Shown: in pieces, positions 29,115-61,640 of the stretch
Layout of the letters: each line of letters starts with the position of its first letter
Position numbering within the stretch: position 1 is the first letter of the stretch
Assembly (NCBI GenBank): GCA_950097015.1
Contig: CATNEN010000004.1
Coordinates: 1 to 64,000 of the forward strand
DNA: 64,000 bases
Source: Macrostomum hystrix
Lineage: Eukaryota; Animalia; Platyhelminthes
Direction: 5' to 3'
Notes under the pieces: generated by a model
Databases searched by the model: none
Told to the model about the DNA's origin: nothing
The model's input: only the letters and a program-made list of their open reading frames with translations
Program-made: the position numbers and the translations under genes

Positions 29115-32100
29115 TTTTGGTAGCTTTGAGTGTCTCCTAATACCTCTGCTTTGAGTGTCTCCTAATACTTATTGGTAGCTTTGAGTGTCTCCTAATACTT
29201 ATTGGTAGCTTTGAGTGTCTCCTAATACTTATTGGTAGCTTTGAGTGTCTCCTAATACTTATTGGTAGCTTTAAGTGTCTCCTAATACTTATTGGTAGCT
29301 TTGAGTGTCTCCTAATACTTATTGGTAGCTTTGAGTGTCTCCTAATACTTATTGGTAGCTTTGAGTGTCTCCTAATACTTATTGGTAGCTTTGAGTGTCT
29401 CCTAATACTTATTGGTAGCTTTGAGTGTCTCCTAATACTTATTGGTAGCTTTGAGTGTCTCCTAATACTTATTGGTAGCTTTGAGTGTCTCCTAATACTT
29501 ATTGGTAGCTTTGAGTGTCTCCTAATACTTATTGGTAGCTTTGAGTGTCTCCTAATACTTATTGGTAGCTTTGAGTGTCTCCTAATACTTATCGGTAGCT
29601 TTGAGTGTCTCCTAATACTTATTGGTAGCTTTGAGTGTCTCCTAATACTTATCGGTAGCTTTGAGTGTCTCCTAATACTTATTGGTAGCTTTAAGTGTCT
29701 CCTAATACTTATTGGTAGCTTTGAGTGTCTCCTAATACCTCTTGGTAGCTTTGAGTGTCTCCTAATACTTATTGTAGCTTTGAGTGTCTCCTAATACTTA
29801 TTGGTAGCTTTGAGTGTCTCCTAATACTTATTGGTTGCTTTGAGTGTCTCCTAATACTTATTGGTTGCTTTGAGTGTCTCCTAATACTTATTGGTAGCTT
29901 TGAGTGTCTCCTAATACTTATTGGTAGCTTTGAGTGTCTCCTAATACTTATTGGTAGCTTTGAGTGTCTCCTAATACTGATTGGTAGCTTTGAGTGTCTC
30001 CTAATACTTATCGGTAGCTTTGAGTGTCTCCTAATACTTATTGGTAGCTTTGAGTGTCTCCTAATACTTATTGGTAGCTTTGAGTGTCTCCTAATACTTA
30101 TCGGTAGCTTTGAGTGTCTCCTAATACTTATCGGTAGCTTTGAGTGTCTCCTAATACTTATTGGTAGCTTTAGGTGTCTCCTAATACTTATTGGTAGCTT
30201 TGAGTGTCTCCTAATACCTCTTGGAAGCTTTGAGTGTCTCCTAATACTTATTGGTAGCTTTGAGTGTCTCCTAATACTTATTGGTAGCTTTGAGTGTCTC
30301 CTAATACTTATTGGTTGCTTTGAGTGTCTCCTAATACTTATTGGTTGCTTTGAGTGTCTCCTAATACTTATTGGTAGCTTTGAGTGTCTCCTAATACTTA
30401 TTGGTTGCTTTGAGTGTCTCCTAATACTTATTGGTAGCTTTGAGTGTCTCCTAATACTGATTGGTAGCTTTGAGTGTCTCCTAATACTTATCGGTAGCTT
30501 TGAGTGTCTCCTAATACTTATTGGTAGCTTTGAGTGTCTCCTAATACCTCTTGGTAGCTTTGAGTGTCTCCTAATACTTATTGGTAGCTTTGAGTGTCTC
30601 CTAATACTTATCGGTAGCTTTGAGTGTCTCCTAATACTTATTGGTAGCTTTGAGTGTCTCCTAATACTTATTGGTAGCTTTGAGTGTCTCCTAATACTGA
30701 TTGGTAGCTTTGATTTGTCTCCTAATACTGATTGGTAGCTTTGAGTGTCTTCCTAATACTTATTGGTAGCTTTGAGTGTCTCCTAATACTGATTGGTAGC
30801 TTTGAGTGTCTCCTAATACTGATTGGTAGCTTTGAGTGTCTCCTAATACTTATTGGTAGCTTTCATTTGTCTCCTAATACTTATTGGTTGCTTTGAGTGT
30901 CTCCTAATACTTATTGGTAGCTTTGAGTGTCTCCTAATACTTATTGGTAGCTTTGATTTGTCTCCTAATACTTATTGGTAGCTTTAAGTGTCTCCTAATA
31001 CTTATTGGTAGCTTTAAGTGTCTCCTAATACTTATTGGTAGCTTTGATTGTCTCCTAATACTTATTGGTAGCTTTGAGTGTCTCCTAATACTTATTGGTA
31101 GCTTTGAGTGTCTCCTAATACTTATTGGTAGCTTTGAGTGTCTCCTAATACTTATTGGTAGCTTTGAGTGTCTCCTAATACTTATTGGTAGCTTTGAGTG
31201 TCTCCTAATACTTATTGGTAGCTTTGACTGTCTCCTAATACTTATTGGTAGCTTTGAGTGTCTCCTAATACTTATTGGTAGCTTTGAGTGTCTCCTAATA
31301 CTTATTGGTAGCTTTGACTGTCTCCTAATACTTATTGGTAGCTTTGAGTGTCTCCTAATACTGATTGGTAGCTTTGAGTGTCTCCTAATACTGATTGGTA
31401 GCTTTGAGTGTCTCCTAATACTTATTGGTAGCTTTGATTTGTCTCCTAATACTTATTGGTAGCTTTAAGTGTCTCCTAATACTTATTGGTAGCTTTGAGT
31501 GTCTCCTAATACTTATTGGTAGCTTTGATTGTCTCCTAATACTTATTGGTAGCTTTGAGTGTCTCCTAATACTTATTGGTAGCTTTAAGTGTCTCCTAAT
31601 ACTTATTGGTAGCTTTGAGTGTCTCCTAATACTTATTGGTAGCTTTGAGTGTCTCCTAATACTTATCGGTAGCTTTGAGTGTCTCCTAATACTTATTGGT
31701 AGCTTTGAGTGTCTCCTAATACTTATCGGTAGCTTTGAGTGTCTCCTAATACTTATTGGTAGCTTTGAGTGTCTCCTAATACTTATTGGTAGCTTTGAGT
31801 GTCTCCTAATACCTCTTGGTAGCTTTGAGTGTCTCCTAATACTTATTGGTAGCTTTGAGTGTCTCCTAATACTTATTGGTAGCTTTGAGTGTCTCCTAAT
31901 ACTTATTGGTTGCTTTGAGTGTCTCCTAATACTTATTGGTAGCTTTGAGTGTCTCCTAATACTTATTGGTAGCTTTGAGTGTCTCCTAATACTTATTGGT
32001 TGCTTTGAGTGTCTCCTAATACTTATTGGTAGCTTTGAGTGTCTCCTAATACTGATTGGTAGCTTTGAGTGTCTCCTAATACTTATTGGTAGCTTTGAGT

Positions 32101-35100
32101 GTCTCCTAATACTTATTGGTAGCTTTGAGTGTCTCCTAATACCTCTTGGTAGCTTTGAGTGTCTCCTAATACTTATTGGTAGCTTTGAGTGTCTCCTAAT
32201 ACTTATCGGTAGCTTTGAGTGTCTCCTAATACTTATTGGTAGCTTTGAGTGTCTCCTAATACTGATTGGTAGCTTTGAGTGTCTCCTAATACTGATTGGT
32301 AGCTTTGATTTGTCTCCTAATACTGATTGGTAGCTTTGAGTGTCTCCTAATACTTATTGGTAGCTTTGAGTGTCTCCTAATACTGATTGGTAGCTTTGAG
32401 TGTCTCCTAATACTGATTGGTAGCTTTGAGTGTCTCCTAATACTTATTGGTAGCTTTGATTTGTCTCCTAATACTTATTGGTTGCTTTGAGTGTCTCCTA
32501 ATACTTATTGGTAGCTTTGAGTGTCTCCAAATACTTATTGGTAGCTTTGATTTGTCTCCTAATACTTATTGGTTGCTTTGAGTGTCTCCTAATACTTATT
32601 GGTAGCTTTGAGTGTCTCCTAATACTGATTGGTAGCTTTGATTTGTCTCCTAATACTTATTGGTTGCTTTGAGTGTCTCCTAATACTTATTGGTAGCTTT
32701 GAGTGTCTCCTAATACTGATTGGTAGCTTTGAGTGTCTCCTAATACTGATTGGTAGCTTTGATTTGTCTCCTAATACTGATTGGTAGCTTTGAGTGTCTC
32801 CTAATACTTATTGGTAGCTTTGAGTGTCTCCTAATACTGATTGGTAGCTTTGAGTGTCTCCTAATACTGATTGGTAGCTTTGAGTGTCTCCTAATACTTA
32901 TTGGTAGCTTTGATTTGTCTCCTAATACTTATTGGTTGCTTTGAGTGTCTCCTAATACTTATTGGTAGCTTTGAGTGTCTCCTAATACTTATTGGTAGCT
33001 TTGATTTGTCTCCTAATACTTATTGGTAGCTTTGAGTGTCTCCTAATACTTATTGGTAGCTTTGAGTGTCTCCTAATACGGATTGGTAGCTTTGAGTGTC
33101 TCCTAATACTTATCGGTAGCTTTGAGTGTCTCCTAATACTTATTGGTAGCTTTGAGTGTCTCCTAATACCTCTTGGTAGCTTTGAGTGTCTCCTAATACT
33201 TATTGGTAGCTTTGAGTGTCTCCTAATACTTATCGGTAGCTTTGAGTGTCTCCTAATACTTATCGGTAGCTTTGAGTGTCTCCTAATACTTATTGGTAGC
33301 TTTGAGTGTCTCCTAATACTGATTGGTAGCTTTGATTTGTCTCCTAATACTGATTGGTAGCTTTGAGTGTCTCCTAATACTTATTGGTAGCTTTGAGTGT
33401 CTCCTAATACTGATTGGTAGCTTTGAGTGTCTCCTAATACTGATTGGTAGCTTTGAGTGTCTCCTAATACTTATTGGTAGCTTTGATTTGTCTCCTAATA
33501 CTTATTGGTTGCTTTGAGTGTCTCCTAATACTTATTGGTAGCTTTGAGTGTCTCTTAATACTTATTGGTAGCTTTGATTTGTCTCCTAATACTTATTGGT
33601 AGCTTTGAGTGTCTCCTAATACTTATTGGTAGCTTTGAGTGTCTCCTAATACTTATTGGTAGCTTTGAGTGTCTCCTAATACTTATTGGTAGCTTTGACT
33701 GTCTCCTAATACTTATTGGTAGCTTTGAGTGTCTCCTAATACTTATTGGTAGCTTTGAATGTCTCCTAATACTTATTGGTAGCTTTGAGTGTCTCCAAAT
33801 ACTTATTGGTAGCTTTGAGTGTCTCCTAATACTTATTGGTAGCTTTGACTGTCTCCTAATACTGATTGGTAGCTTTGAGTGTCTCCTAATACTTATTGGT
33901 AGCTTTGATTTGTCTCCTAATACTTATTGGTTGCCTTGAGTGTCTCCTAATACTTATTGGTAGCTTTGAGTGTCTCCTAATACTTATTGGTAGCTTTGAT
34001 TTGTCTCCTAATACTTATTGGTAGCTTTAAGTGTCTCCTAATACTTATTGGTAGCTTTAAGTGTCTCCTAATACTTATTGGTAGCTTTGATTGTCTCCTA
34101 ATACTTATTGGTAGCTTTGAGTGTCTCCTAATACTTATTGGTAGCTTTGAGTGTCTCCTAATACTTATTGGTAGCTTTGAGTGTCTCCTAATACTTATTG
34201 GTAGCTTTGAGTGTCTCCTAATACTTATCGGTAGCTTTGAGTGTCTCCTAATACTTATTGGTAGCTTTGAGTGTCTCCTAATACTTATCGGTAGCTTTGA
34301 GTGTCTCCTAATACTTATTGGTAGCTTTAAGTGTCTCCTAATACTTATTGGTAGCTTTGAGTGTCTCCTAATACCTCTTGGTAGCTTTGAGTGTCTCCAA
34401 ATACTTATTGGTAGCTTTGAGTGTCTCCTAATACTGATTGGTAGCTTTGAGTGTCTCCTAATACTTATTGGTAGCTTTGAGTGTCTCCTAATACTTATTG
34501 GTTGCTTTGAGTGTCTCCTAATACTTATTGGTAGCTTTGAGTGTCTCCTAATACTTATCGGTAGCTTTGAGTGTCTCCTAATACTTATTGGTAGCTTTGA
34601 GTGTCTCCTAATACTGATTGGTAGCTTTGATTTGTCTCCTAATACTTATTGGTAGCTTTGAGTGTCTCCTAATACCTCTTGGTAGCTTTGAGTGTCTCCT
34701 AATACTTATTGGTAGCTTTGAGTGCCTCCTAATACTTATCGGTAGCTTTGAGTGTCTCCTAATACTTATTGGTAGCTTTGAGTGTCTCCTAATACTTATT
34801 GGTTGCTTTGAGTGTCTCCTAATACTTATTGGTAGCTTTGAGTGTCTCCTAATACTTATTGGTTGCTTTGAGTGTCTCCTAATACTTATTGGTTGCTTTG
34901 AGTGTCTCCTAATACTTATTGGTAGCTTTGAGTGTCTCCTAATACTTATTGGTAGCTTTGAGTGTCTCCTAATACTTATTGGTTGCTTTGACTGTCTCCT
35001 AATACTTATTGGTAGCTTTGAGTGTCTCCTAATACTTATCGGTAGCTTTGAGTGTCTCCTAATACTTATTGGTAGCTTTGAGTGTCTCCTAATACTGATT

Positions 35101-38100
35101 GGTAGCTTTGATTTGTCTCCTAATACTTATTGGTAGCTTTGAGTGTCTCCTAATACCTCTTGGTAGCTTTGAGTGTCTCCTAATACTTATTGGTAGCTTT
35201 GAGTGTCTCCTAATACTTATCGGTAGCTTTGAGTGTCTCCTAATACTTATTGGTAGCTTTGAGTGTCTCCTAATACTTATTGGTTGCTTTGAGTGTCTCC
35301 TAATACTGATTGGTAGCTTTGATTGTCTCCTAATACTTATTGGTAGCTTTGAGTGTCTCCTAATACTTATTGGTAGCTTTGAGTGTCTCCTAATACTTAT
35401 TGGTAGCTTTGAGTGTCTCCTAATACTTATTGGTTGCCTTGAGTGTCTCCTAATACTTATCGGTAGCTTTGAGTGTCTCCTAATACTTATTGGTAGCTTT
35501 GAGTGTCTCCTAATACTTATTGGTTGCTTTGAGTGTCTCCTAATCCTTATTGGTAGCTTTGATTTGTCTCCTAATACTTATTGGTAGCTTTAAGTGTCTC
35601 CTAATACTTATTGGTAGCTTTGAGTGTCTCCTAATACCTCTTGGTAGCTTTGAGTGTCTCCTAATACTTATTGGTAGCTTTGAGTGTCTCCTAATACTTA
35701 TTGGTTGCTTTGAGTGTCTCCTAATACTGATTGGTAGCTTTGAGTGTCTCCTAATACTGATTGGTAGCTTTGAGTGTCTCCTAATACTTATCGGTAGCTT
35801 TGAGTGTCTCCTAATACTTATCGGTAGCTTTGAGTGTCTCCTAATACTTATTGGTAGCTTTGAGTGTCTCCTAATACTGATTGGTAGCTTTGATTTGTCT
35901 CCTAATACTGATTGGTAGCTTTGAGTGTCTCCTAATACTTATTGGTAGCTTTGAGTGTCTCCTAATACTGATTGGTAGCTTTGAGTGTCTCCTAATACTG
36001 ATTGGTAGCTTTGAGTGTCTCCTAATACTTATTGGTAGCTTTGATTTGTCTCCTAATACTTATTGGTTGCTTTGAGTGTCTCCTAATACTTATTGGTAGC
36101 TTTGAGTGTCTCTTAATACTTATTGGTAGCTTTGATTTGTCTCCTAATACTTATTGGTAGCTTTGAGTGTCTCCTAATACTTATTGGTAGCTTTGAGTGT
36201 CTCCTAATACTTATTGGTAGCTTTGAGTGTCTCCTAATACTTATTGGTAGCTTTGACTGTCTCCTAATACTTATTGGTAGCTTTGAGTGTCTCCTAATAC
36301 TTATTGGTAGCTTTGAATGTCTCCTAATACTTATTGGTAGCTTTGAGTGTCTCCAAATACTTATTGGTAGCTTTGAGTGTCTCCTAATACTTATTGGTAG
36401 CTTTGACTGTCTCCTAATACTGATTGGTAGCTTTGAGTGTCTCCTAATACTTATTGGTAGCTTTGATTTGTCTCCTAATACTTATTGGTTGCCTTGAGTG
36501 TCTCCTAATACTTATTGGTAGCTTTGAGTGTCTCCTAATACTTATTGGTAGCTTTGATTTGTCTCCTAATACTTATTGGTAGCTTTAAGTGTCTCCTAAT
36601 ACTTATTGGTAGCTTTAAGTGTCTCCTAATACTTATTGGTAGCTTTGATTGTCTCCTAATACTTATTGGTAGCTTTGAGTGTCTCCTAATACTTATTGGT
36701 AGCTTTGAGTGTCTCCTAATACTTATTGGTAGCTTTGAGTGTCTCCTAATACTTATTGGTAGCTTTGAGTGTCTCCTAATACTTATCGGTAGCTTTGAGT
36801 GTCTCCTAATACTTATTGGTAGCTTTGAGTGTCTCCTAATACTTATCGGTAGCTTTGAGTGTCTCCTAATACTTATTGGTAGCTTTAAGTGTCTCCTAAT
36901 ACTTATTGGTAGCTTTGAGTGTCTCCTAATACCTCTTGGTAGCTTTGAGTGTCTCCAAATACTTATTGGTAGCTTTGAGTGTCTCCTAATACTGATTGGT
37001 AGCTTTGAGTGTCTCCTAATACTTATTGGTAGCTTTGAGTGTCTCCTAATACTTATTGGTTGCTTTGAGTGTCTCCTAATACTTATTGGTAGCTTTGAGT
37101 GTCTCCTAATACTTATCGGTAGCTTTGAGTGTCTCCTAATACTTATTGGTAGCTTTGAGTGTCTCCTAATACTGATTGGTAGCTTTGATTTGTCTCCTAA
37201 TACTTATTGGTAGCTTTGAGTGTCTCCTAATACCTCTTGGTAGCTTTGAGTGTCTCCTAATACTTATTGGTAGCTTTGAGTGTCTCCTAATACTTATCGG
37301 TAGCTTTGAGTGTCTCCTAATACTTATTGGTAGCTTTGAGTGTCTCCTAATACTTATTGGTTGCTTTGAGTGTCTCCTAATACTTATTGGTAGCTTTGAG
37401 TGTCTCCTAATACTTATTGGTTGCTTTGAGTGTCTCCTAATACTTATTGGTTGCTTTGAGTGTCTCCTAATACTTATTGGTAGCTTTGAGTGTCTCCTAA
37501 TACTTATTGGTAGCTTTGAGTGTCTCCTAATACTTATTGGTTGCTTTGACTGTCTCCTAATACTTATTGGTAGCTTTGAGTGTCTCCTAATACTTATCGG
37601 TAGCTTTGAGTGTCTCCTAATACTTATTGGTAGCTTTGAGTGTCTCCTAATACTGATTGGTAGCTTTGATTTGTCTCCTAATACTTATTGGTAGCTTTGA
37701 GTGTCTCCTAATACCTCTTGGTAGCTTTGAGTGTCTCCTAATACTTATTGGTAGCTTTGAGTGTCTCCTAATACTTATCGGTAGCTTTGAGTGTCTCCTA
37801 ATACTTATTGGTAGCTTTGAGTGTCTCCTAATACTTATTGGTTGCTTTGAGTGTCTCCTAATACTGATTGGTAGCTTTGATTGTCTCCTAATACTTATTG
37901 GTAGCTTTGAGTGTCTCCTAATACTTATTGGTAGCTTTGAGTGTCTCCTAATACTTATTGGTAGCTTTGAGTGTCTCCTAATACTTATTGGTTGCCTTGA
38001 GTGTCTCCTAATACTTATCGGTAGCTTTGAGTGTCTCCTAATACTTATTGGTAGCTTTGAGTGTCTCCTAATACTTATTGGTTGCTTTGAGTGTCTCCTA

Positions 38101-41100
38101 ATCCTTATTGGTAGCTTTGATTTGTCTCCTAATACTTATTGGTAGCTTTAAGTGTCTCCTAATACTTATTGGTAGCTTTGAGTGTCTCCTAATACCTCTT
38201 GGTAGCTTTGAGTGTCTCCTAATACTTATTGGTAGCTTTGAGTGTCTCCTAATACTTATCGGTAGCTTTGAGTGTCTCCTAATACTTATTGGTAGCTTTG
38301 AGTGTCTCCTAATACTTATCGGTAGCTTTGAGTGTCTCCTAATACTTATTGGTAGCTTCAAGTGTCTCCTAATACTTATTGGTAGCTTTGAGTGTCTCCT
38401 AATACCTCTTGGTAGCTTTGAGTGTCTCCTAATACTTATTGGTAGCTTTGAGTGTCTCCTAATACTTATTGGTAGCTTTGAGTGTCTCCTAATACTTATT
38501 GGTTGCTTTGAGTGTCTCCTAATACTTATTGGTTGCTTTGAGTGTCTCCTAATACTTATTGGTAGCTTTGAGTGTCTCCTAATACTTATTGGTAGCTTTG
38601 AGTGTCTCCTAATACTTATTGGTTGCTTTGAGTGTCTCCTAATACTTATTGGTAGCTTTGAGTGTCTCCTAATACTTATTGGTTGCTTTGAGTGTCTCCT
38701 AATACTGATTGGTAGCTTTGAGTGTCTCCTAATACTGATTGGTAGCTTTGAGTGTCTCCTAATACTTATCGGTAGCTTTGAGTGTCTCCTAATACTTATT
38801 GGTAGCTTTGAGTGTCTCCTAATACTTATCGGTAGCTTTGAGTGTCTCCTAATACTTATCGGTAGCTTTGAGTGTCTCCTAATACTTATCGGTAGCTTTG
38901 AGTGTCTCCTAATACTTATTGGTAGCTTTGAGTGTCTCCTAATACTTATTGGTAGCTTTGAGTGTCTCCTAATACTTATCGGTAGCTTTGAGTGTCTCCT
39001 AATACTTATCGGTAGCTTTGAGTGTCTCCTAATACTTATCGGTAGCTTTGAGTGTCTCCTAATACTTATTGGTAGCTTTGAGTGTCTCCTAATACTGATT
39101 GGTAGCTTTGAGTGTCTCCTAATACTTATTGGTAGCTTTGAGTGTCTCCTAATACTGATTGGTAGCTTTGAGTGTCTCCTAATACTGATTGGTAGCTTTG
39201 AGTGTCTCCTAATACTTATTGGTAGCTTTGATTTGTCTCCTAATACTTATTGGTTGCTTTGAGTGTCTCCTAATACTTATTGGTAGCTTTGAGTGTCTCC
39301 TAATACTTATTGGTAGCTTTGATTTGTCTCCTAATACTTATTGGTAGCTTTGAGTGTCTCCTAATACTTATTGGTAGCTTTGAGTGTCTCCAAATACTTA
39401 TTGGTAGCTTTGAGTGTCTCCTAATACTTATTGGTAGCTTTGACTGTCTCCTAATACTTATTGGTAGCTTTGAGTGTCTCCTAATACTTATTGGTAGCTT
39501 TGACTGTCTCCTAATACTTATTGGTAGCTTTGAGTGTCTCCTAATACTGATTGGTAGCTTTGAGTGTCTCCTAATACTGATTGGTAGCTTTGAGTGTCTC
39601 CTAATACTTATTGGTAGCTTTGATTTGTCTCCTAATACTTATTGGTTGCTTTGAGTGTCTCCTAATACTTATTGGTAGCTTTGAGTGTCTCCTAATACTT
39701 ATTGGTAGCTTTGAGTGTCTCCTAATACTTATTGGTTGCCTTGAGTGTCTCCTAATACTTATTGGTTGCTTTGAGTGTCTCCTAATCCTTATTGGTAGCT
39801 TTGATTTGTCTCCTAATACTTATTGGTAGCTTTAAGTGTCTCCTAATACTTATTGGTAGCTTTGAGTGTCTCCTAATACCTCTTGGTAGCTTTGAGTGTC
39901 TCCTAATACTTATTGGTAGCTTTGAGTGTCTCCTAATACTTATCGGTAGCTTTGAGTGTCTCCTAATACTTATTGGTAGCTTTGAGTGTCTCCTAATACT
40001 TATCGGTAGCTTTGAGTGTCTCCTAATACTTATTGGTAGCTTTAAGTGTCTCCTAATACTTATTGGTAGCTTTGAGTGTCTCCTAATACCTCTTGGTAGC
40101 TTTGAGTGTCTCCTAATACTTATTGGTAGCTTTGAGTGTCTCCTAATACTTATTGGTAGCTTTGAGTGTCTCCTAATACTTATTGGTTGCTTTGAGTGTC
40201 TCCTAATACTTATTGGTTGCTTTGAGTGTCTCCTAATACTTATTGGTAGCTTTGAGTGTCTCCTAATACTTATTGGTAGCTTTGAGTGTCTCCTAATACT
40301 TATTGGTTGCTTTGACTGTCTCCTAATACTTATTGGTAGCTTTGAGTGTCTCCTAATACTTATTGGTAGCTTTAAGTGTCTCCTAATACTTATTGGTTGC
40401 TTTGAGTGTCTCCTAATACTTATTGGTAGCTTTGAGTGTCTCCTAATACTGATTGGTAGCTTTGAGTGTCTCCTAATACTTATCGGTAGCTTTGAGTGTC
40501 TCCTAATACTTATTGGTAGCTTTGAGTGTCTCCTAATACTTATCGGTAGCTTTGAGTGTCTCCTAATACTTATTGGTAGCTTTGACTGTCTCCTAATACT
40601 TATTGGTAGCTTTGAGTGTCTCCTAATACTTATTGGTAGCTTTGAGTGTCTCCTAATACTTATTGGTAGCTTTGAGTGTCTCCTAATACTTATTGGTTGC
40701 TTTGAGTGTCTCCTAATACTTATTGGTAGCTTTGAGTGTCTCCTAATACTGATTGGTAGCTTTGAGTGTCTCCTAATACTTATCGGTAGCTTTGAGTGTC
40801 TCCTAATACTTATTGGTAGCTTTGAGTGTCTCCTAATACTTATCGGTAGCTTTGAGTGTCTCCTAATACTTATTGGTAGCTTTGAGTGTCTCCTAATACT
40901 TATCGGTAGCTTTGAGTGTCTCCTAATACTTATTGGTAGCTTTGAGTGTCTCCTAATACTTATTGGTAGCTTTGATTTGTCTCCTAATACTGATTGGTAG
41001 CTTTGATTTGTCTCCTAATACTGATTGGTAGCTTTGAGTGTCTCCTAATACTTATTGGTAGCTTTGAGTGTCTCCTAATACTGATTGGTAGCTTTGAGTG

Positions 41101-42640
41101 TCTCCTAATACTGATTGGTAGCTTTGAGTGTCTCCTAATACTTATTGGTAGCTTTGATTTGTCTCCTAATACTTATTGGTTGCTTTGAGTGTCTCCTAAT
41201 ACTTATTGGTAGCTTTGAGTGTCTCCTAATACTTATTGGTAGCTTTGATTTGTCTCCTAATACTTATTGGTAGCTTTGAGTGTCTCCTAATACTTATTGG
41301 TTGCTTTGAGTGTCTCCAAATACTTATTGGTAGCTTTGAGTGTCTCCTAATACTTATTGGTAGCTTTGACTGTCTCCTAATACTTATTGGTAGCTTTGAG
41401 TGTCTCCTAATACTTATTGGTAGCTTTGACTGTCTCCTAATACTTATTGGTAGCTTTGAGTGTCTCCTAATACTGATTGGTAGCTTTGAGTGTCTCCTAA
41501 TACTGATTGGTAGCTTTGAGTGTCTCCTAATACTTATTGGTAGCTTTGATTTGTCTCCTAATACTTATTGGTTGCTTTGAGTGTCTCCTAATACTTATTG
41601 GTAGCTTTGATTTGTCTCCTAATACTTATTGGTTGCTTTGAGTGTCTCCTAATACTTATTGGTAGCTTTGAGTGTCTCCTAATACTTATTGGTAGCTTTG
41701 ATTTGTCTCCTAATACTTATTGGTTGCTTTGATTTGTCTCCTAATACTTATTGGTAGCTTTGATTTGTCTCCTAATACTTATTGGTTGCTTTGAGTGTCT
41801 CCTAATACTTATTGGTAGCTTTGATTGTCTCCTAATACTTATTGGTAGCTTTGATTTGTCTCCTAATACTTATTGGTTGCTTTGATTGTCTCCTAATACT
41901 TATTGGTTGCTTTGATTTGTTTTCTAATACTTATTGGTAGCTTTGAGTGTCTCCTAATACTTATTGGTAGCTTTGAGTGTCTCCTAATACTTATTGGTAG
42001 CTTTGATTTGTCTCCTAATACTTATTATTTGCTTTGAGTGTCTCCTAATACTTATTGGTAGCTTTGATTGTCTCCTAATACTTATTGGTAGCTTTGATTT
42101 GTCTCCTAATATTTATTGGTTGCTTTGATTTGTCTCCTAATACCTCTTGGTAGCTTTGAGTGTCTCCTAATACCTCTTGGTAGCTTTGAGTGTCTCCTAA
42201 TACTTATTGGTAGCTTTGAGTGTCGCCTAATACTTATTGGTAGCTTTGATTGTCTCCTAATACTTATTGGTTGCTTTGAGTGTCTCCTAATTCCTCTTGG
42301 TAGCCTTGAGTGTCTCCTAATACTTATTGGTTGCTTTGATTTGTCTCCTAATACTTATTGGTAGCTTTGAGTGTCTGCTAATACTTCTTGGTAGCTTTGA
42401 TTTGTCTCCCAATACTTATTGGTAGCTTTGAGTGTCTCCTAATACTTATTGGTAGCTTTGAGTGTCTCCTAATACTGATTGGTAGCTTTGAGTGTCTGCT
42501 AATACTTATTGGTAGCTTTGATTTGTCTCCCAATACTTATTGGTAGCTTTGAGTGTCTCCTAATACTTATTGGTAGCTTTGAGTGTCTCCTAATACTTAT
42601 TGGTAGCTTTGAGTGTCTCCTAATACCTGTCTCCTAATCT
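29115..42640 (+). repeat. Large satellite (~13.5 kb), 30-nt unit TTGAGTGTCTCCTAATACTTATTGGTAGCT, with higher-order structure
   Basis: Roughly 450 units. 31-nt variant units recur at an exact 2558-nt offset between 33.3-35.9 kb and 35.9-38.4 kb. Confidence 0.98.
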
Positions 42641-53898: not shown

Positions 53899-55844
53899 AT
53901 GGCCAGCGGCCTGTTCCTTCGGCTGCAGGCGCAGCAGTTGCCAGTGAAGATGTACGGCTTCGACTCGGTGGATCGGGATCGCGAGAGGGACATTGTGGCC
54001 CGCCTGACGGCGCCTCCGAGGGCTTCGTCGGCTGCTTCGAATCGGCAGTATCGCGACGGTGGGGTCGGCGGCAACAAAGGAGGACGACCGGTCTCGGCTT
54101 CGTCCAGCAGCAAGGCAGCTGAAGATGTCGACGAGGACGATGGATCCGATGACGGGTCGGTCTGCGAGCGCTACCGGACCGATATGCGGTCCGAGGCGCG
54201 ACCACGGCGACTGCTGGCAGCCGAAGACTATTCTAAGGCGTTGTTCGCCCGCCTAGGCAGGTCGCACACCTTCAGCAGCAGGTGCAAGCAGCGGGGCCTG
54301 GATCCGCACCGCCTGTGCAGCCGGGGAGCAGGCGAACTGCCCGACTATGCGCCAATACAGGACATCAACGCAGCCGCGAAGGCGCCACCGCCGCCGCCAC
54401 CGGATAAAAAAAAGCAGCAGCAGCAAGTTAGTTATACAAATATTTGTGAACAATAAACCCTTCAACATTGGATTGCTAATCTAGTCTCTGTGAGTAGGGA
54501 ATAAAAAGATAGTGGATTGCTAATCTAGTCTCTGTGAGTAGGGAATAGAGAGATAGTGGATTGCCAATCTAGTCTCTGTGAGTAGGGAATAGAGAGATAG
54601 TGGATTGCTAATCTAGTCTCTGTGAGTAGGGAATAGAGAGATAGTGGATTGCTAATCTAGTCTCTGTGAGTAGGGAATAGAGAGATAGTGGATTGCTAAT
54701 CTAGTCTCTGTGAGTAGGGAATAGAGAGATAATGGATTGCTAATCTAGTCTCTGTGAGTAGGGAATAGAGAGATAGTGGATTGCTAATCTAGCCTCATCA
54801 ATCTGACGTCGGCCCGCTCCTGTATGCCCTCAGCCGCAGCGCCAAGGCCCCAGTTTGGCCGTAGTTCTCGGCTTCAGCCGGATGGCCAGTCGAGCTTCGG
54901 CACTGGCCGAGGCCAGCAAGGCGCCGGAGCGTCGCCAGGAAGCGGCAAAGCAGCGGGCCAGCCCGTTCGGCCTGGTGTTTCGCACAGCGGAGCAGCGCGA
55001 CCCAGACGGTGGCGGCGGCGCCGAGAAGACGGTGGCCTCCACGGCGGTGTTCGGGGCGCTGGGCCGGCTGCGCTACCGGGCCAAGCGGGAGGAGATTCAG
55101 CAGCGGGATCGGGACCAGCGAGCCAGGCAGCTGCAGTCCAACTGGGAGATCGTCAACGCGACGGAATTCGTGCGCAATTTCGAACGGGAGAACAGTCGAG
55201 GGATGCGACTTGCCATCCTGGGCCGGCCGACCGTCTCCAGCCGATTCAAAGGCAGTGTCGGTGGCGGCGGCAGCAGCAGCGGCGGCTGTCCGTTCTGTCA
55301 GGAGATGCCGGAGTTGGCGCTCGAGTGGCAGCAGAGGTTAGCGTCGGCCCGCGGCGAACGCGACGGCGCCAACGACGAGGACAATTACGACTCGGAATGT
55401 CAACGATGCGGTCGACATCACCGCGTCTGGAAGCTGCCGCCGAAGGAGCAGCCAGACGAAGCCGTGGGCGGCGCGGCTCAGACGACGCTGACAGCGGATG
55501 CGGAGGCGGCGGCGAAAGCGGCTGAAGCCGAGGCGGCCCGGATTGCCAGGCTGCGCGCGCCGACCAGAGCCAGCGAAGGCGGCGTGCCGTTCTGCCAGCG
55601 CGGCCAGTCGGACGCCGGACCATGGCTGGGCAGCGCGCTGCTGGGCTTCGAGGCGCATCGGCCCAAGAGCGCCCTGGAGCGGGTGCGGAGCTCGCAGAGG
55701 AGGCGCGAACTCATCGACGCCATGTCTGTCCGGCTGCATAGCCGCGGCGGAGGCGGAGGCGGAGGCGGAGGTGGGGGCGGAGGCGGAGGCGGAGGCCGCT
55801 TAATTGCTGAACGAAGGCCCGTCAGCGGTCGCGTTCTGTCTTAG
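53899..55844 (+). CDS. Unnamed ~512-aa Ala/Gly/Arg-rich protein (exons 53899-54426, 54834-55844)
   Basis: Donor caa|gttag and acceptor ccctcag|ccg (phase 0, branch-like CTGAC upstream) join the two ORFs. It contains a CPFC...CQRC pair and a C-terminal poly-Gly tract. Confidence 0.72.
54465..54792 (+). repeat. Intronic minisatellite, 44-nt unit GTGGATTGCTAATCTAGTCTCTGTGAGTAGGGAATAGAGAGATA
   Basis: About 7 units inside intron 54427-54833. Confidence 0.93.
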
Positions 55845-56269
55845 CGCCTTGTACTCAATGTCACTTCTGATTTGCTATGTTTTAACAATTGTAACTAAGA
55901 TTAAACGATACTCATTAGAAATACAGATTAGAGGTACTTTAATATCGTGCCTCAAGTAAGTCAGTTTGCTGCTATCACGGAACAACCTAATGTCAAGTCC
56001 AGTCCAGATTATCCAGTCAAGCTTCTCAAAAAGGGTTTGAGATAAGCATAAAAAATACAACAGTTCCTCTGTGACTATAAGCAATGAATAATTAAATTTA
56101 AGGAGCGCTTCTGATTAAATTACGCGACTCAAATAAGCTGAGCAGAATGGATGCAGCTAAGAGCTCGTAAATTGGGATAATAACAGACTTGACAATCTTA
56201 GCAGTACAATGGTTAGTCAGATTTCTTTAGACAGCTTACTGTATTTCGTGTTACCGCTACACCTCAATC

Positions 56270-56360
56270 TTCCATTACCCCAGCTAATACTGATACCCAT
56301 TTGTTCCAGTGGAGTCGGGAATCGAACCCCGGCCTTCAAGTCGTGAGTCCACAACACTAC
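56270..56360 (-). mobile_element. Internally deleted family A SINE fragment
   Basis: Minus strand GGGTTCGATTCCCGACTCCACTGGAACAA is joined directly to AATGGGTA, skipping most of the CORE-like segment seen at 4925-5198. Confidence 0.55.
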
Positions 56361-56476
56361 TAAAACTCATTTAGCGCACTGTTTTGTATTCAAACTGCTC
56401 GAATAAAAAGGGAAAATATATTATGAAAATTAAGAAAGTTAGGAAGGCCAGAAACTACAGCAACTCTTGCTTTTGG

Positions 56477-59232
56477 TTAATGATTAAGTCGGTCACTGTG
56501 AAGATGGCTGGAACAGCTGCCGAAGAGCGTCCTCAAGGCCATTTCGCTCCACCAGCCACCAGCAGAGCATTCAAAGTATGCCAATGCACCGATCTCCGCA
56601 GCCATCTGGCTTCCCTGCTGCTCACTGATGGGATCTAGGCCCTGCGCCTTCAGCTGATCGATTGTTGACTGGTCGATTCTCAGATCCAGCTGGGTACCGA
56701 CAAGCACTATGGGGGCCTCAGGACAGTAGCAGCTCAGCTCAGGGTGCCATCTCAGTTTAACGCTTTCAAAGCTAGCCGGGTTGATTACGCTAAAGCAGAC
56801 AAAAAACACATCCGCTTGGTAATACCTCTGCAGCCGGCAGTTATCAAATGCATCCGAGTTTCTAGTGTCCACAAAATTGAAGCGCCTGAAGCAGTCTCTG
56901 AAACAAACGACTTTAGAATGGAAATCGCTCGCGCCGTGGTTGTACAAGTGTTGCTCCTCCGAGAATGCATTTGCCAGAGAAGTTTTTCCCACAGCCTCGT
57001 CTCCAATCAGGACGATGTTCACCGATGCGATCTCGCTTTTAGAACTCGGTTCCTCGACTGACAAAGTATTCGCGCTGAAAAATTCATCAACGCAATCATC
57101 ATCTTCCGCTGAATAAGTTGGAGCCCCCTCGTGAAACTTGATTTCCATTGAGTCTTGGGGTCTGAAAATCACGAAATGTAATATTTTTGTGCTGTTTAAT
57201 TGGCTATTTAGTTGCTACAATTACCTCGCCTCTGAATCATCTGAGTCCTTGTCCACAGCGGTTTGCAGGGCCACTTCGAGGACAGTCTCCAGACCTGCAC
57301 GTGTCATGGCTGAGCACTCGATGTACATTTTAGCTCCAATTTTGCTGGCCAAATTCATTCCTAAAGAGCAGCTCGCGTCTTTTTCTCGAAGGTCGATTTT
57401 TGTTCCGACCAGAATGACCGGCGTGTTCGGGCAGTGCTGAGTGACCTCCGGGTGCCATCGGGTGAGCACGCTTTCAAACGAGGCAGAACTGACGACTGAG
57501 AAGCAGATGAGAATCACGTCTGCCTGACTGTAGTTATTCGGCCGCATCCAGTCAAAGCTCCTTGATCCGCTGAGGTCCCAGAAGCCGACAGCAACTTTTT
57601 GACCGTCCCACGAGAACTTCCATTCTGAAGCAGTCGTCAGTCTCGGTTGGCGCGTAGCTCAACGAACAGCTGCCTTCAGCGAGTGCACTGAGCAGGCAAG
57701 TCTTGCCTACTTCCTTCGTCACCAATGGCTACTATTTTTAGTATAGCTGCTGTCGCCAGTGACAGGCGTTGGTACAACCTCCTTGTCTGTTCGCAGTCCT
57801 CACTGCTCAGCGAACCTGTTTGCAGGCTTGTGTTTGGAGTTTGTTTGAGGTAATTAGTGAACTTGCTTGCTTGACTAGTCTAGTTGTCACAGATAACCTA
57901 ACTGATCAGTCTAGCACGTCTTTTACCTTGGTTGAGCTTCCACTGTGGAGGTCCTGTCATATTTGACACATTCAATGTCAGATTTCAATAATCTTTCAAG
58001 AGAACTACTCGTAGCTCCATCAGAATAACGTGCAGGTCCAGCAACATTGGGTAGTGACCTGGTATTTGAAGATAGAACAAGCAGCAGTGATAGCCACTCA
58101 GAATAACATCATAAATATTACGAGCCAACTTGATTAGACTCACAATCCAAGCGAATCCTTGTCACGCTTTGTTTTGAAAGAGCGCTTGAAAACCTTGAAA
58201 ATATTTCCTTGGAATCTGAAAGAAAGCAATTATTAATAATTGCAGGAGGGCTGCAGGCAGTGGCACATCATTTGGTGACGCTCGACCCGCAGCCAGCGAG
58301 GAGGCAATTCTGCCCATTCCGCTGACTCCTGAGCACACACGCACATAGGTGTGTACATCTGCCCTGACTTTCTCATCGTCAGGCAGTGTACACTTTCACT
58401 GTGCCTTGGAGCTGGGCCCTCAATGGCGTAAATTGCACACCCAAGCGTTCTCTCCGCGGCTGCGCCCCAAATAAATGTGGCCTCGCCGCGGAATCGAACA
58501 TAGGGACCTTGTTGCGAGAGGCAAACGCGTTAACCGCTCTGCCACCGACCACGAACTTCTGCACTAGAGAAAAAGATTTCCCATTTTAACTGCATCTGCA
58601 ATGAGGCGATCGTAAAGTTAGACTATTTCCCATTGGAAGTACTTTGCTACTCACGATTTATTCTTACGGCCCTTCTTGTTCGTTTCTGGCTTTGAGCCGA
58701 GCGCAGCACGGATGGCTTCGTCAAAAACATTCTTCACACCCTTCTGAGTCTTGGCCGAGCACTCCAAGTACTTCACTGCTTTGATCTCCTTGGCCATCGT
58801 GATGCCCTGCAGTTGCGTTGTCGGAGCCAAGTTTTCCTCCTTAAGCTTGGCGATTTTTACCTGGTCGTCGCGAAGATCCAGCATGGTGCCCACCAGCACA
58901 ATGGGAATGTTCGGACAGCAATGCTCAACTTCTGGGTACCACTTGGTGCGCACATTCTCATAGCTGGTCGGGCTGATGAGTGAGAAGCAGATGATGAACA
59001 CATCCGTATCCGGGTAGCTCAGCAGCCTGAGCCTGTCGTATTGTTCTGCGCCAGCGGTGTCACAAAAGTCCAAGTTGATCTGCTTGTTGTCAATCATGAG
59101 ATTTACAGAGTAGTTGTCGCTTAACGTAGGGGGACACCACCCTTCTTCCCAGCTGTTTTTAATGTATGAAGTGAGCAGGCAGGTCTTGCCGATAGCGCCA
59201 TCTCCGACAACGACGCACTTGATGCGGTCCAT
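56477..59232 (-). CDS. Single 5-exon gene encoding three tandem Rho/Rac-family GTPase domains, ~704 aa (exons 58655-59232, 58144-58215, 57927-58058, 57225-57874, 56477-57161)
   Basis: Domain 1 is Rac-like ([19 protein letters not shown]). Domain 2 has GDEGVGKT, DLSG, TKID, CSA; domain 3 has [19 protein letters not shown]. Donors GTGAGT, GTGAGT, GTAAAA and GTAATT with AG acceptors are all phase 2. Two 1-nt insertions in exon 4 (57711-57712, 57607-57609) must be removed. Confidence 0.78.
58250..58552 (-). mobile_element. Family B SINE (copy 2, in intron 1 of the triple-Rho gene)
   Basis: Reverse-complement match to 22786-23110 (GGCAGAGCGGTTAACGCGTTTGCCTCTCGC...GATGAGAAAGTCAGGGCAGATGTACACACC). 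Confidence 0.75.
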
Positions 59233-59689
59233 GGCCTCGATGTAACTTATTTACTTATTTGAGTTAGGTAATTAGCAGCTTGTTAAATGCTTTTCACCAG
59301 TAGCCAAAGGCGGTGCACAGAAAATTCAGTAATCAGCGTAGCAGAAGTATCTACGCCGATGCTGCGTAAAACCCCAATTTTATATCTTTAAGGACGGGTT
59401 GAAATGGGCTAGAAAGAAAATCCTTAATTACCTTCGAAATCAAGAGACTTTTTGCACCATTTTTCGAGTCAGACTAGGCGGATACGATTAAATAGATGCG
59501 GATGTTTTGAAATGGACTGAATCGGCATCTCTCATTTCACAATTTTCTAACTTTCTTTCGTCTTCTCATCGCTCTACTACTGTGTACAGTGAGCAGTTAG
59601 ACTGAGTTCAGAGTCCGTTCTCTGCATCTGCAGGCAACAATGCAACAATATGCAATAATAGTATTCATATATGCAGGAGGGCACAGGTG

Positions 59690-59850
59690 AGTACATCTGC
59701 CCTGACTTTTTCATTATTAGGCCTTGGTGGTTGGTCGGCGTCAATTGTACGACAAACCCCTAAGCCTTCTCTCCGCGGTTGCGTCCGAAATGAATGTGGC
59801 CTCGCCGCGGAATCGAGCTTAGGGACCTTGGTGCGAAAGGCGTGCATTGT
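59690..59850 (-). mobile_element. Family B SINE (copy 3, partial)
   Basis: Shares ATCTGCCCTGACTTT and AATGTGGCCTCGCCGCGGAATCGA with copy 2. Confidence 0.68.
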
Positions 59851-60109
59851 AATGTGCAATTGTGCATTGTGCATTGTTGTTGCTGCTTTTTATTTTCATT
59901 AGGCCCAACAGTGAGATCTCGTAAGAAATTATTTTTTTAATATAGAGCTGTACAGTACTTTAAATAAATATCTCTATCTGTAAAGTACATTGAAGCCCAA
60001 AGATTAGAGCTTTAGACTTCTTACCAAAAGTTTCGAATTTCGAATCTAAGCCTAATGAAACGTTTTCTCTTGAGTATGACGCTTATAGATTCACAAGCGT
60101 CATTTATTC

Positions 60110-61098
60110 AGAATATCAAAGAGTATCACAGAATATCAAAGAGTATCACAGAATGTCATGTCACAGAGTATCACAGAATATCAAAGAGTATCACAGAATA
60201 TCAAAGAGTATCACAGAATATCAAAGAGTATAACAGAATGTCATGTCACAGAGTATCACAGAATATCAAAGAGTATCACAGAATATCAAAGAGTATCACA
60301 GAATGTCACAAAGTATCACAGATTATCACAGAATGCCACAGAATGTCACAAAGTATCCCAGATTATCACAGAATGCCACAGAATGTCACAAAGTATCACA
60401 GATTATCACAGAATGCCACAGAATGCCAAAGAGTATCACAGATTATCACAGAATGCCACAGAATGCCACAAAGTATCACAGATTATCACAGAATGCCACA
60501 GAATGTCACAAAGTATCACAGATTATCACAGAATGCCACAGAATGCCACAAAGTATCACAGATTATCACAGAATGCCACAGAATGTCACAAAGTATCACA
60601 GATTATCACAGAATGCCACAGAATGCCACAAAGTATCACAGATTATCACAGAATGCCACAGAATGTCACAAAGTATCACAGAGTATCACAGAATGTCACA
60701 GATTATCACAGAATGCCACAGAATGTCACAAAGTATCCCAGATTATCACAGAATGCCACAGAATGCCACAAAGTATCACAGATTATCACAGAATGCCACA
60801 GAATGCCACAAAGTATCACAGATTATCACAGAATGCCACAGAATGTCACAAAGTATCACAGATTATCACAGAATGCCACAGAATGTCACAAAGTATCACA
60901 GATTATCACAGAATGCCACAGAATGCCACAAAGTATCACAGATTATCACAGAATGCCACAGAATGCCACAAAGTATCACAGATTATCACAGAATGCCACA
61001 GAATGTCACAAAGTATCACAGATTATCACAGAATGCCACAGAATGCCACAAAGTATCACAGATTATCACAGAATGCCACAGAATGCCACAAAGTATCA
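60110..61098 (+). repeat. Minisatellite: 40-nt higher-order unit built from four 10-mers (CACAGATTAT, CACAGAATGC, CACAGAATGY, CACAAAGTAT)
   Basis: The 10-nt subunit and 40-nt period are directly visible. Confidence 0.93.
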
Positions 61099-61640
61099 CA
61101 GATTATCACAGAATGCCATATAATTTTACCGGAATGCTCAGTTGCCTAGCTGCATTTAATTTTGTCCTAGGTAGTCATAGACTGGCAACGTTGTTTTCGG
61201 GATAATTTAGCATGGTGATATACTATCGAAATGCAATAACTCGGTAAGAATTACCAGAATCAAACCAGCATCTGGTCGTCTATTTCAAACCAATCTCACT
61301 CACTCAGTGGATCCAAATAGTTATTAACACGAATTCAGTTAGTACAACAAATTTAGCAATAAAACGTTTTTAATCCTACTGGAAGTAGCAATATTAGCGT
61401 TTTAATTCTAACAAACACTAACAAACACGCCATGCTAGTGCATGCATACGATTAGGTTAAAATGAAATCTTTGGTTTATAGCAAGAATTATGAATAGCCT
61501 AATTATCTATTTTAGAAGAATAATATTATAAAATCCCTTTCTCGTTGCTACCTCAGTTCTCACTAATAAGATTTGCTAGTCAAAGCCAAAAACACAACGA
61601 TTAACGAATCGAGCTTTTCTAGAATCCATTCACCTGCGAA

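Follow-up and report, generated by a model that had tools for sequence, protein, structure and literature searches.

The 64,000-nucleotide (nt) window analysed here, taken from contig CATNEN010000004.1 of the flatworm Macrostomum hystrix, carries on the minus strand between positions 59232 and 56477 what is very probably a single five-exon gene, transcribed into one messenger RNA (mRNA) and encoding a 688-residue protein with three Rho-family GTPase domains (D1, D2 and D3, numbered from the N-terminus), which we read as a Rac-like multivalent scaffold or decoy. Rho GTPases are textbook single-domain switches, and phrase searches of 8.4 million open papers and preprints, subscription journals lying outside their scope, returned no description of tandem Rho-domain proteins. 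A first-pass annotation, made from the DNA letters, had named no tandem triple-Rho protein as known to be described; this holds for the literature so searched, but the public sequence sets contain similar predicted proteins with three to six Rho domains, which sit there unstudied.

In the genome sequence the three domains appear as separate open reading frames (ORFs) on the minus strand, each with a Ras-family match (D1, 59232-58654; D2, 57658-57224; D3, 57214-56480). The first-pass annotation had proposed that these ORFs are exons of one mRNA, read in one frame, and the RNA bears this out, since all four junctions are spliced and the transcripts are free of both frameshifts that interrupt D2. 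As had been noticed in the letters, the apparent stop of D1 (TGA, 58651-58653) sits within the donor of intron 1 (tc/GTGAGT), and the apparent stop of D2 (TAA, 57221-57223) sits within the donor of intron 4 (ag/GTAATT). Both short linker exons are open reading stretches, bordered by AG on one side and GT on the other. All four introns are GT..AG introns and, as predicted, of phase 2, with 578, 650, 782 and 1382 coding nt ahead of introns 1 to 4, respectively. Once corrected by RNA, the coding sequence (CDS) adds up to 578 + 72 + 132 + 600 + 685 = 2067 nt, that is, 688 codons plus a stop in a single frame with no internal stop, in place of the 2115 nt and 704 amino acids given at first; if the genome letters are left unchanged and the five exons are taken as first proposed, the sum is 2117 nt and D2 falls into three successive frames. 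Exon 1 opens with an ATG (59232-59230) in a good Kozak context (gccATGG), holds the whole of D1 (residues 1-193) and closes with the polybasic end KKGRKNK. In the spliced translation, in which the two codons at the 57713/57715 and 57607 sites were masked as X, no in-frame Met follows residue 1 until about residue 327; as none lies ahead of the D2 P-loop, D2 can be translated only from the ATG of D1, as part of a fusion.

The RNA data come as assembled contigs; the four public runs behind them (X1 to X4), all belonging to one study, contain 43-54% of the sampled words of 56400-59300. Because the contigs cover the exons, at a depth of 4-8, and leave intergenic DNA bare, they derive from RNA; their joints read CT..AC on the plus strand, and thus GT..AG on the minus strand, at all four introns. 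A 689-nt contig links exons 1, 2 and 3, and further contigs of similar depth link exons 3-4 and 4-5. Three of the junctions recur in the RNA exactly where they had been predicted (58655/58215, 58144/58058 and 57225/57161), the joint across intron 2 being reported as 58056->58142, which gives 58058/58144 when the cut is moved by +2. Intron 3 had to be redrawn. The 52-nt form first put forward (57875-57926, with exon 4 starting at 57874) occurs in no RNA contig of the four runs and is rejected, the RNA using an acceptor 48 nt further on, so that exon 4 starts at 57826; since the difference is 48 nt, the reading frame is kept. Separately, a contig of run X2 (56863-56925 and 56957-56974) skips 61 nt with noncanonical AG..AA borders and carries six mismatches nearby; it probably represents a divergent allele or a paralogue of D3 and not a splice form. 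The features of the locus are collected in Table 1.

Table 1. Features of the triple-Rho locus of M. hystrix and motifs of its three domains.
Feature	Position	Strand	Description	Evidence
Exon 1	58655..59232	minus	578 nt; D1	ORF; Pfam Ras; Rac1 structures; RNA contigs 58655-59223
Intron 1	58216..58654	minus	439 nt, GT..AG, phase 2	joint 58215->58655 in 4/4 runs
Exon 2	58144..58215	minus	72 nt; basic and aromatic linker [23 protein letters not shown]	both sides spliced in RNA contigs
Intron 2	58059..58143	minus	85 nt, GT..AG, phase 2	joint in 3/4 runs
Exon 3	57927..58058	minus	132 nt; Ser/Thr-rich linker, no Pfam match	sequence; Pfam scan; RNA contigs
Intron 3	57827..57926	minus	100 nt, GT..AG, phase 2	joint 57826->57927 in 3/4 runs
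Exon 4	57225..57826	minus	602 nt in genome, 600 nt in RNA; linker end and D2 (~57750-57225)	sequence; Pfam; own hidden Markov model; alignment
Extra genomic base	57713..57715	minus	extra relative to every covering RNA contig	runs X1, X3, X4
Extra genomic base	57607	minus	in run TGGG	run X1, the sole run covering
Intron 4	57162..57224	minus	63 nt, GT..AG, phase 2	joint 57161->57225 in 3/4 runs
Exon 5, coding part	56477..57161	minus	685 nt including stop TAA 56477-56479; acidic linker and D3 (~57031-56507)	sequence; Pfam; hidden Markov model; alignment; AlphaFold2
Tandem repeat	56549..56562	minus	7-nt CTGGTGG x2, just after the D3 ECSA motif	sequence; RNA agrees
3' untranslated region	56398..56476	minus	reaches at least 56398	RNA contig of run X1 spans 56398-56617
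P-loop			D1 GDGAIGKT; D2 GDE-VGKT; D3 GDEAVGKT	Rac1 alignment
Position 35			D1 Thr; D2 Thr (PTETDDC); D3 Ser	Rac1 alignment
DxxG and position 61			D1 DTAGA (Gln61Ala); D2 DLSGS (Gln61Ser); D3 DTRNS (Gly60Asn, Gln61Ser)	Rac1 alignment
N/TKxD			D1 TMLD (Lys116Met); D2 TKID; D3 TQLD	Rac1 alignment
Rho insert (beta5-alpha4)			D1 present; D2 absent (~13-residue deletion); D3 present	Rac1 alignment

The same locus could in principle be read as three separate tandem Rho genes, in which case the bridging contigs would be rare read-through products or chimeras and the main products would have a single domain, such as a 193-residue D1 made by retention of intron 1. Each domain does lie on an exon of its own, followed by a stop if the next intron stays, an ATG in frame (MEIKF) precedes the P-loop of D3, and any share of unspliced molecules would be invisible to contigs. 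At the junction sites, however, spliced forms are the sole forms reported, in 3-4 of the 4 independent samples and at the depth of exons, while D2 is without a start of its own ahead of its P-loop and the unspliced reading of D1, which ends in KNKS, itself has no CAAX box. Moreover, exons 2 and 3 serve only as linkers, no stop interrupts the ~140 linker codons and the phases match from each domain to the next, a combination (stop-free codons and agreeing phases) expected by chance at about 1e-4 on a rough estimate; this argues for one protein rather than three, and we regard separate genes as highly unlikely.

The two base corrections that had been called for in exon 4 were also found in RNA, and both 'frameshifts' in D2 are most likely errors of the genome consensus. 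At 57713/57715 the RNA has two variants, GAAGAA and GAGGAA, which are synonymous (Glu-Glu), where the assembly has GAAGGAA, so that the assembled letters can be explained by heterozygosity at this site, from which an erroneous consensus was made. Without the extra base at 57607 the frame is restored and reads ...[15 protein letters not shown]. The same RNA contigs otherwise match the locus with no mismatches over 170-220 nt. The reading of D2 as a pseudogene is rejected on the strength of RNA free of both extra bases, and further genes that look 'frameshifted' in this assembly may owe it to similar artefacts.

When the open pieces were scanned for domains, D1, the D2 piece and D3 all matched Pfam Ras (PF00071) above the gathering score, with E-values of 1.6e-42, 5.3e-24 and 2.2e-24, respectively, and a hidden Markov model that we built from 40 Rac and Rho sequences placed the domains of the spliced protein at residues 1-193, 287-465 and 505-679. 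The best solved relative of both D1 (3.5e-79) and D3 (3.5e-36) is Rac1. An AlphaFold2 model of D3, computed from a 64-sequence alignment, shows a complete G-domain fold with a mean predicted local distance difference test (pLDDT) score of 82, rising to 90-98 in the core. In the alignment with Rac1, all three domains have intact G1 and G5, ECSA motifs and hydrophobic cores. D1 and D2 also preserve DxxG, which is broken in D3 (DTRN), and TKxD is intact in D2 only. D2 carries WDLSGS and D3 carries [14 protein letters not shown] where DTAGQ would be expected, a Glu occupies the Gly12 position of D2 and D3, and the catalytic Gln61 is retained in none of the three. In one RNA run we observed an A>C variant at 59062, which changes a Cys of D1 to Trp at the Trp56 position (LDFCDTAG to LDFWDTAG), the reference having the unusual residue.

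The linkers differ in character. That between D1 and D2 (~95 residues) is basic and rich in Ser and Thr (21 Lys + Arg and 24 Ser + Thr, counted over 112 residues) and opens with [27 protein letters not shown], a stretch of basic and aromatic residues; that between D2 and D3 (~45 residues) is acidic, with 12 Asp + Glu counted over 48 residues. The linker pieces are without any Pfam match, EF hands included, none of the pieces matches a BTB domain, a RhoGAP domain is absent, and the C-terminus is not hydrophobic. No domain ends in a CAAX box, the protein terminating in ...HSDRLNH with no Cys among its last 8 residues, and D1, D2 and D3 lack both marks of a classical prenylated, cycling Rho protein, Gln61 and the CAAX box.

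Given the loss of Gln61 in all three domains, the Glu at the Gly12 position of D2 and D3 and the lack of a CAAX box, a normal GTPase cycle and cycling on membranes through prenylation and RhoGDI are unlikely; judged by its motifs, the protein is unlikely to cycle as Rac does. D1 and D2 retain the requirements for GTP and Mg binding, and would probably be GTP-bound with slow hydrolysis, in the manner of Rnd, RhoH and RhoBTB. Since its DxxG is broken, D3 is probably a non-switching, pseudo-GTPase-like domain. The most likely route to a membrane would be electrostatic, through the polybasic tail of D1 and the basic and aromatic residues of exon 2. On this reading the triple-Rho protein may serve Rac regulators and effectors as a scaffold or decoy that is Rac-like, multivalent and constitutively 'on'.

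A cycling switch could be preserved without Gln61 if the protein were an intramolecular counterpart of the GTPases activated by dimerization (GADs, Der/EngA, GIMAPs), with catalytic residues supplied in trans. It is established that Der and GIMAP8 carry G domains in tandem and that other G proteins depend on dimers for catalysis, and D1 and D2 keep their P-loop, Thr35 and DxxG. The sequence, however, holds no pointer to a residue that would act in trans, and we know of no Rho-family domain that uses dimerization-activated catalysis; such a mechanism strikes us as improbable, and a scaffold or decoy with little hydrolysis remains the preferred reading.

Set beside known systems, the protein shares with Rac1 the sequence similarity of D1 and D3, the Rho insert of these two domains, and the P-loop and ECSA motifs of all three. 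It departs from Rac1 in having three domains per chain, no CAAX box and a replaced Gln61 in each domain, as well as in the replacement of Lys116 in D1 and D3 and of Gly60 in D3, and in the missing Rho insert of D2. In the atypical Rho proteins Rnd1-3, RhoH and RhoBTB, as in the triple-Rho protein, substitutions at the Gly12 and Gln61 positions predict poor hydrolysis; Rnd and RhoH are single-domain and prenylated, and RhoBTB combines one Rho domain with BTB domains. With its broken DxxG, D3 resembles the pseudo-GTPase domains of p190RhoGAP, which, in contrast, flank a RhoGAP domain. Miro (RHOT1/2) likewise has more than one Ras-superfamily G domain per polypeptide, but its two G domains are unlike each other and lie on either side of EF hands, and the protein has a membrane anchor at its C-terminus (PMC4810086), whereas the three domains found here are Rac-derived and their linkers have no EF hand by Pfam. 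GIMAP8 is the known case of a protein that carries a tandem of three G domains (PMC4201521). Its domains are of the AIG1/GIMAP type, the protein is vertebrate and lymphocyte-specific, and its relation to the triple-Rho protein is limited to the P-loop GTPase fold.

The first-pass annotation had regarded the protein as a lineage-specific product of tandem duplication. The label 'lineage-specific' is too narrow, because relatives exist in Macrostomum lignano, and the duplications are probably old. Rac1 proteins of many animals share 65-70% identity with D1, which is equally close to Rac of many phyla and has no identical protein in the collection searched. Searched domain by domain, public protein sets yielded no match above 70% for D1 or above 53% for D2 and D3. 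In a search of 1.84 billion cluster representatives with D3, the best matches were multi-Rho proteins with 2-4 matched stretches each, among them A0A1I8GCE2 of M. lignano (1207 amino acids, four Rho domains, four matched stretches) and a protein from ENA (ERZ25039556 contig_22715; 786 amino acids, three matched stretches); proteins with several Ras-family domains, for which a search had been suggested, thus do occur elsewhere, also as the predicted 888-residue tandem-Rho protein M0811_03444 of Anaeramoeba ignava. A search started from the M. lignano protein added the 1888-residue model P0162, with six Ras domains and a partial caspase domain, and BOX15_Mlig000293g2 (757 amino acids), with Ras and Peptidase_C14. 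The nearest relatives of D2 and D3 are the predicted M. lignano multi-Rho proteins, at 47-53% identity; among the M. lignano domains, d4 shares 52% identity with D2 and d2 shares 47% with D3.

A quick maximum-likelihood tree of 41 domains grouped D1 with the Rac proteins of M. lignano, Patella and Hydra (69% identical) with moderate support (Shimodaira-Hasegawa-like approximate likelihood ratio test, SH-aLRT, 83-87), and placed D2 and D3 in a clade with M. lignano d2, d4 and d6 (SH-aLRT 89). Since D2 and D3 each resemble a different type of M. lignano domain, their duplications are, as far as sequence comparison can tell, probably old and not recent local tandem copies of D1. The domains of the Anaeramoeba and ENA proteins each cluster within their own protein, which indicates that these tandem arrays arose by independent internal duplications. 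As with the triple-Rho gene, the ORF behind each of them carries at least three Rho domains. The ENA protein differs in its N-terminal hydrophobic segment and repeat linkers. The 786-residue ENA ORF, from another eukaryote, is intronless, and it thus establishes that three Rho domains can be encoded in one ORF without the merging of gene models.

The likeness to M. lignano extends to gene structure and motifs. There, too, the domains are colinear with one exon each and GT donors at the domain borders, a TAG lying within one of these donors, and the GDE P-loop, the PTETDDC switch I and the Ser at position 61 of D2 are common to the M. lignano relatives, GDE being present in D3 as well. The M. 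lignano proteins, known from gene models only, differ in having more domains and a C-terminal Peptidase_C14 domain, whereas the triple-Rho CDS stops at 56477. No caspase or other added domain was found in the window, where searches of the translated DNA (tblastn) with the M. lignano proteins match the three Rho domains only and Pfam adds nothing further. In M. lignano, on NIVC01001849.1 (178174-194755), several Rho exons lie colinear upstream of a gene for Rho and Peptidase_C14 (caspase). Two annotations split this multi-Rho locus differently (P0163, P0001, P0162), one fusing 4-6 Rho domains with the caspase and the other separating them; a Rho-caspase fusion appears to be undescribed.

Several points weigh against a single functional triple-Rho protein. 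The RNA support comes from short assembled contigs of 160-690 nt, none of which spans D1 to D3 and which can neither exclude nor quantify unspliced or D1-only forms; the correction at 57607 is covered by one run; and the protein itself is predicted from RNA and sequence. What is said here of nucleotide binding and hydrolysis draws throughout on motifs, read in the light of established knowledge of the Ras and Rho families. The searches with D2 and D3 found no close orthologue above 53% identity, and the distance from M. lignano is too large for dN/dS or synteny comparisons. The support for the placement of D2 and D3 is moderate, and D3, which sits on a long branch, is less certain in its position. 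Finally, the last 27 residues of D3 are unmatched by Ras or Rho profiles, and a second frame from the CTGGTGG repeat, [20 protein letters not shown], aligns somewhat better to alpha5, which could mean decay of D3. We provisionally kept the D3 tail as the genome reads and made no frame correction; two RNA contigs (56398-56617 and 56427-56761) are gapless relative to the genome at the repeat, and the tail as written is predicted to be helical (pLDDT ~73) and aligns with alpha5 of Rac1 up to about residue 170.

Another reading is that the locus is decaying: transcribed and spliced, with D2 and D3 pseudogenised, the genomic frameshifts real on this haplotype, the alpha5 helix of D3 out of frame, the catalytic motifs lost, and only D1 or nothing functional. 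Such decay would fit the two frameshifts in the assembled D2, the poorer fit of the D3 end, the progressive loss of catalytic residues from D1 to D3 and a polymorphism in D1 that alters a residue (Cys or Trp at the Trp56 position). It sits badly with RNA contigs that carry the intact frame at both D2 sites while otherwise matching the locus, with the pair of RNA variants that accounts for the assembly error at 57713/57715, and with P-loops, ECSA motifs and hydrophobic cores that are intact throughout. D3 is modelled confidently, its tail is predicted to be helical and aligns with Rac1 as described above, and the GDE P-loop and PTETDDC, being common to the M. lignano relatives, look like conserved family traits and not like damage. 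We consider decay quite unlikely, and one gene for one three-domain protein the better account of the locus.

Elsewhere in the window, a GC-rich region (0.60) just downstream, at 54800-55850, has long ORFs overlapping on both strands and RNA contigs of 1.3-1.5 kb, and is an expressed neighbour of the triple-Rho gene. A tandem repeat at 60055-61205 is open in all three plus-strand frames, with repeated HRMSQSITEY-like peptides, and is not covered by RNA in any of the four runs. Copies of a dispersed repeat, tRNA-like by eye, lie at 58244-58611 (in intron 1), 59716-59899 and 56220-56403; its RNA contigs reach a depth of up to ~11,000, compared with 4-8 for the gene, and many of them link copies or continue into unrelated sequence. 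ARAGORN and Rfam, run over the whole window, called nothing, this repeat included. About 12 kb of near-constant composition at 30000-42000 (GC ~0.37, AT skew ~-0.38) suggests a long tandem array.

The triple-Rho gene points to another route by which the Rho family yields non-switching scaffold or pseudo-GTPase proteins, and to an unstudied family that includes Rho-caspase fusions in the laboratory flatworm Macrostomum lignano. Because such genes, with stop codons inside their splice donors and with indels in the consensus, look like three separate or broken ORFs, annotation pipelines will split or discard them. A broader idea, which we put forward as speculative and rather unlikely, is that of a conserved 'poly-Rho' family, in which a hydrolysis-deficient, Rac-like tandem forms a regulatory or oligomerization platform that is fused to a caspase in M. 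lignano; the family may be confined to flatworms or spiralians. If this were true, the poly-Rho-caspase would represent an unrecognised form of caspase control based on GTPase domains, with a logic akin to that of NOD- and ROCO-type platforms, and the caspase-less triple-Rho protein of M. hystrix would be a regulator or decoy of that caspase pathway.

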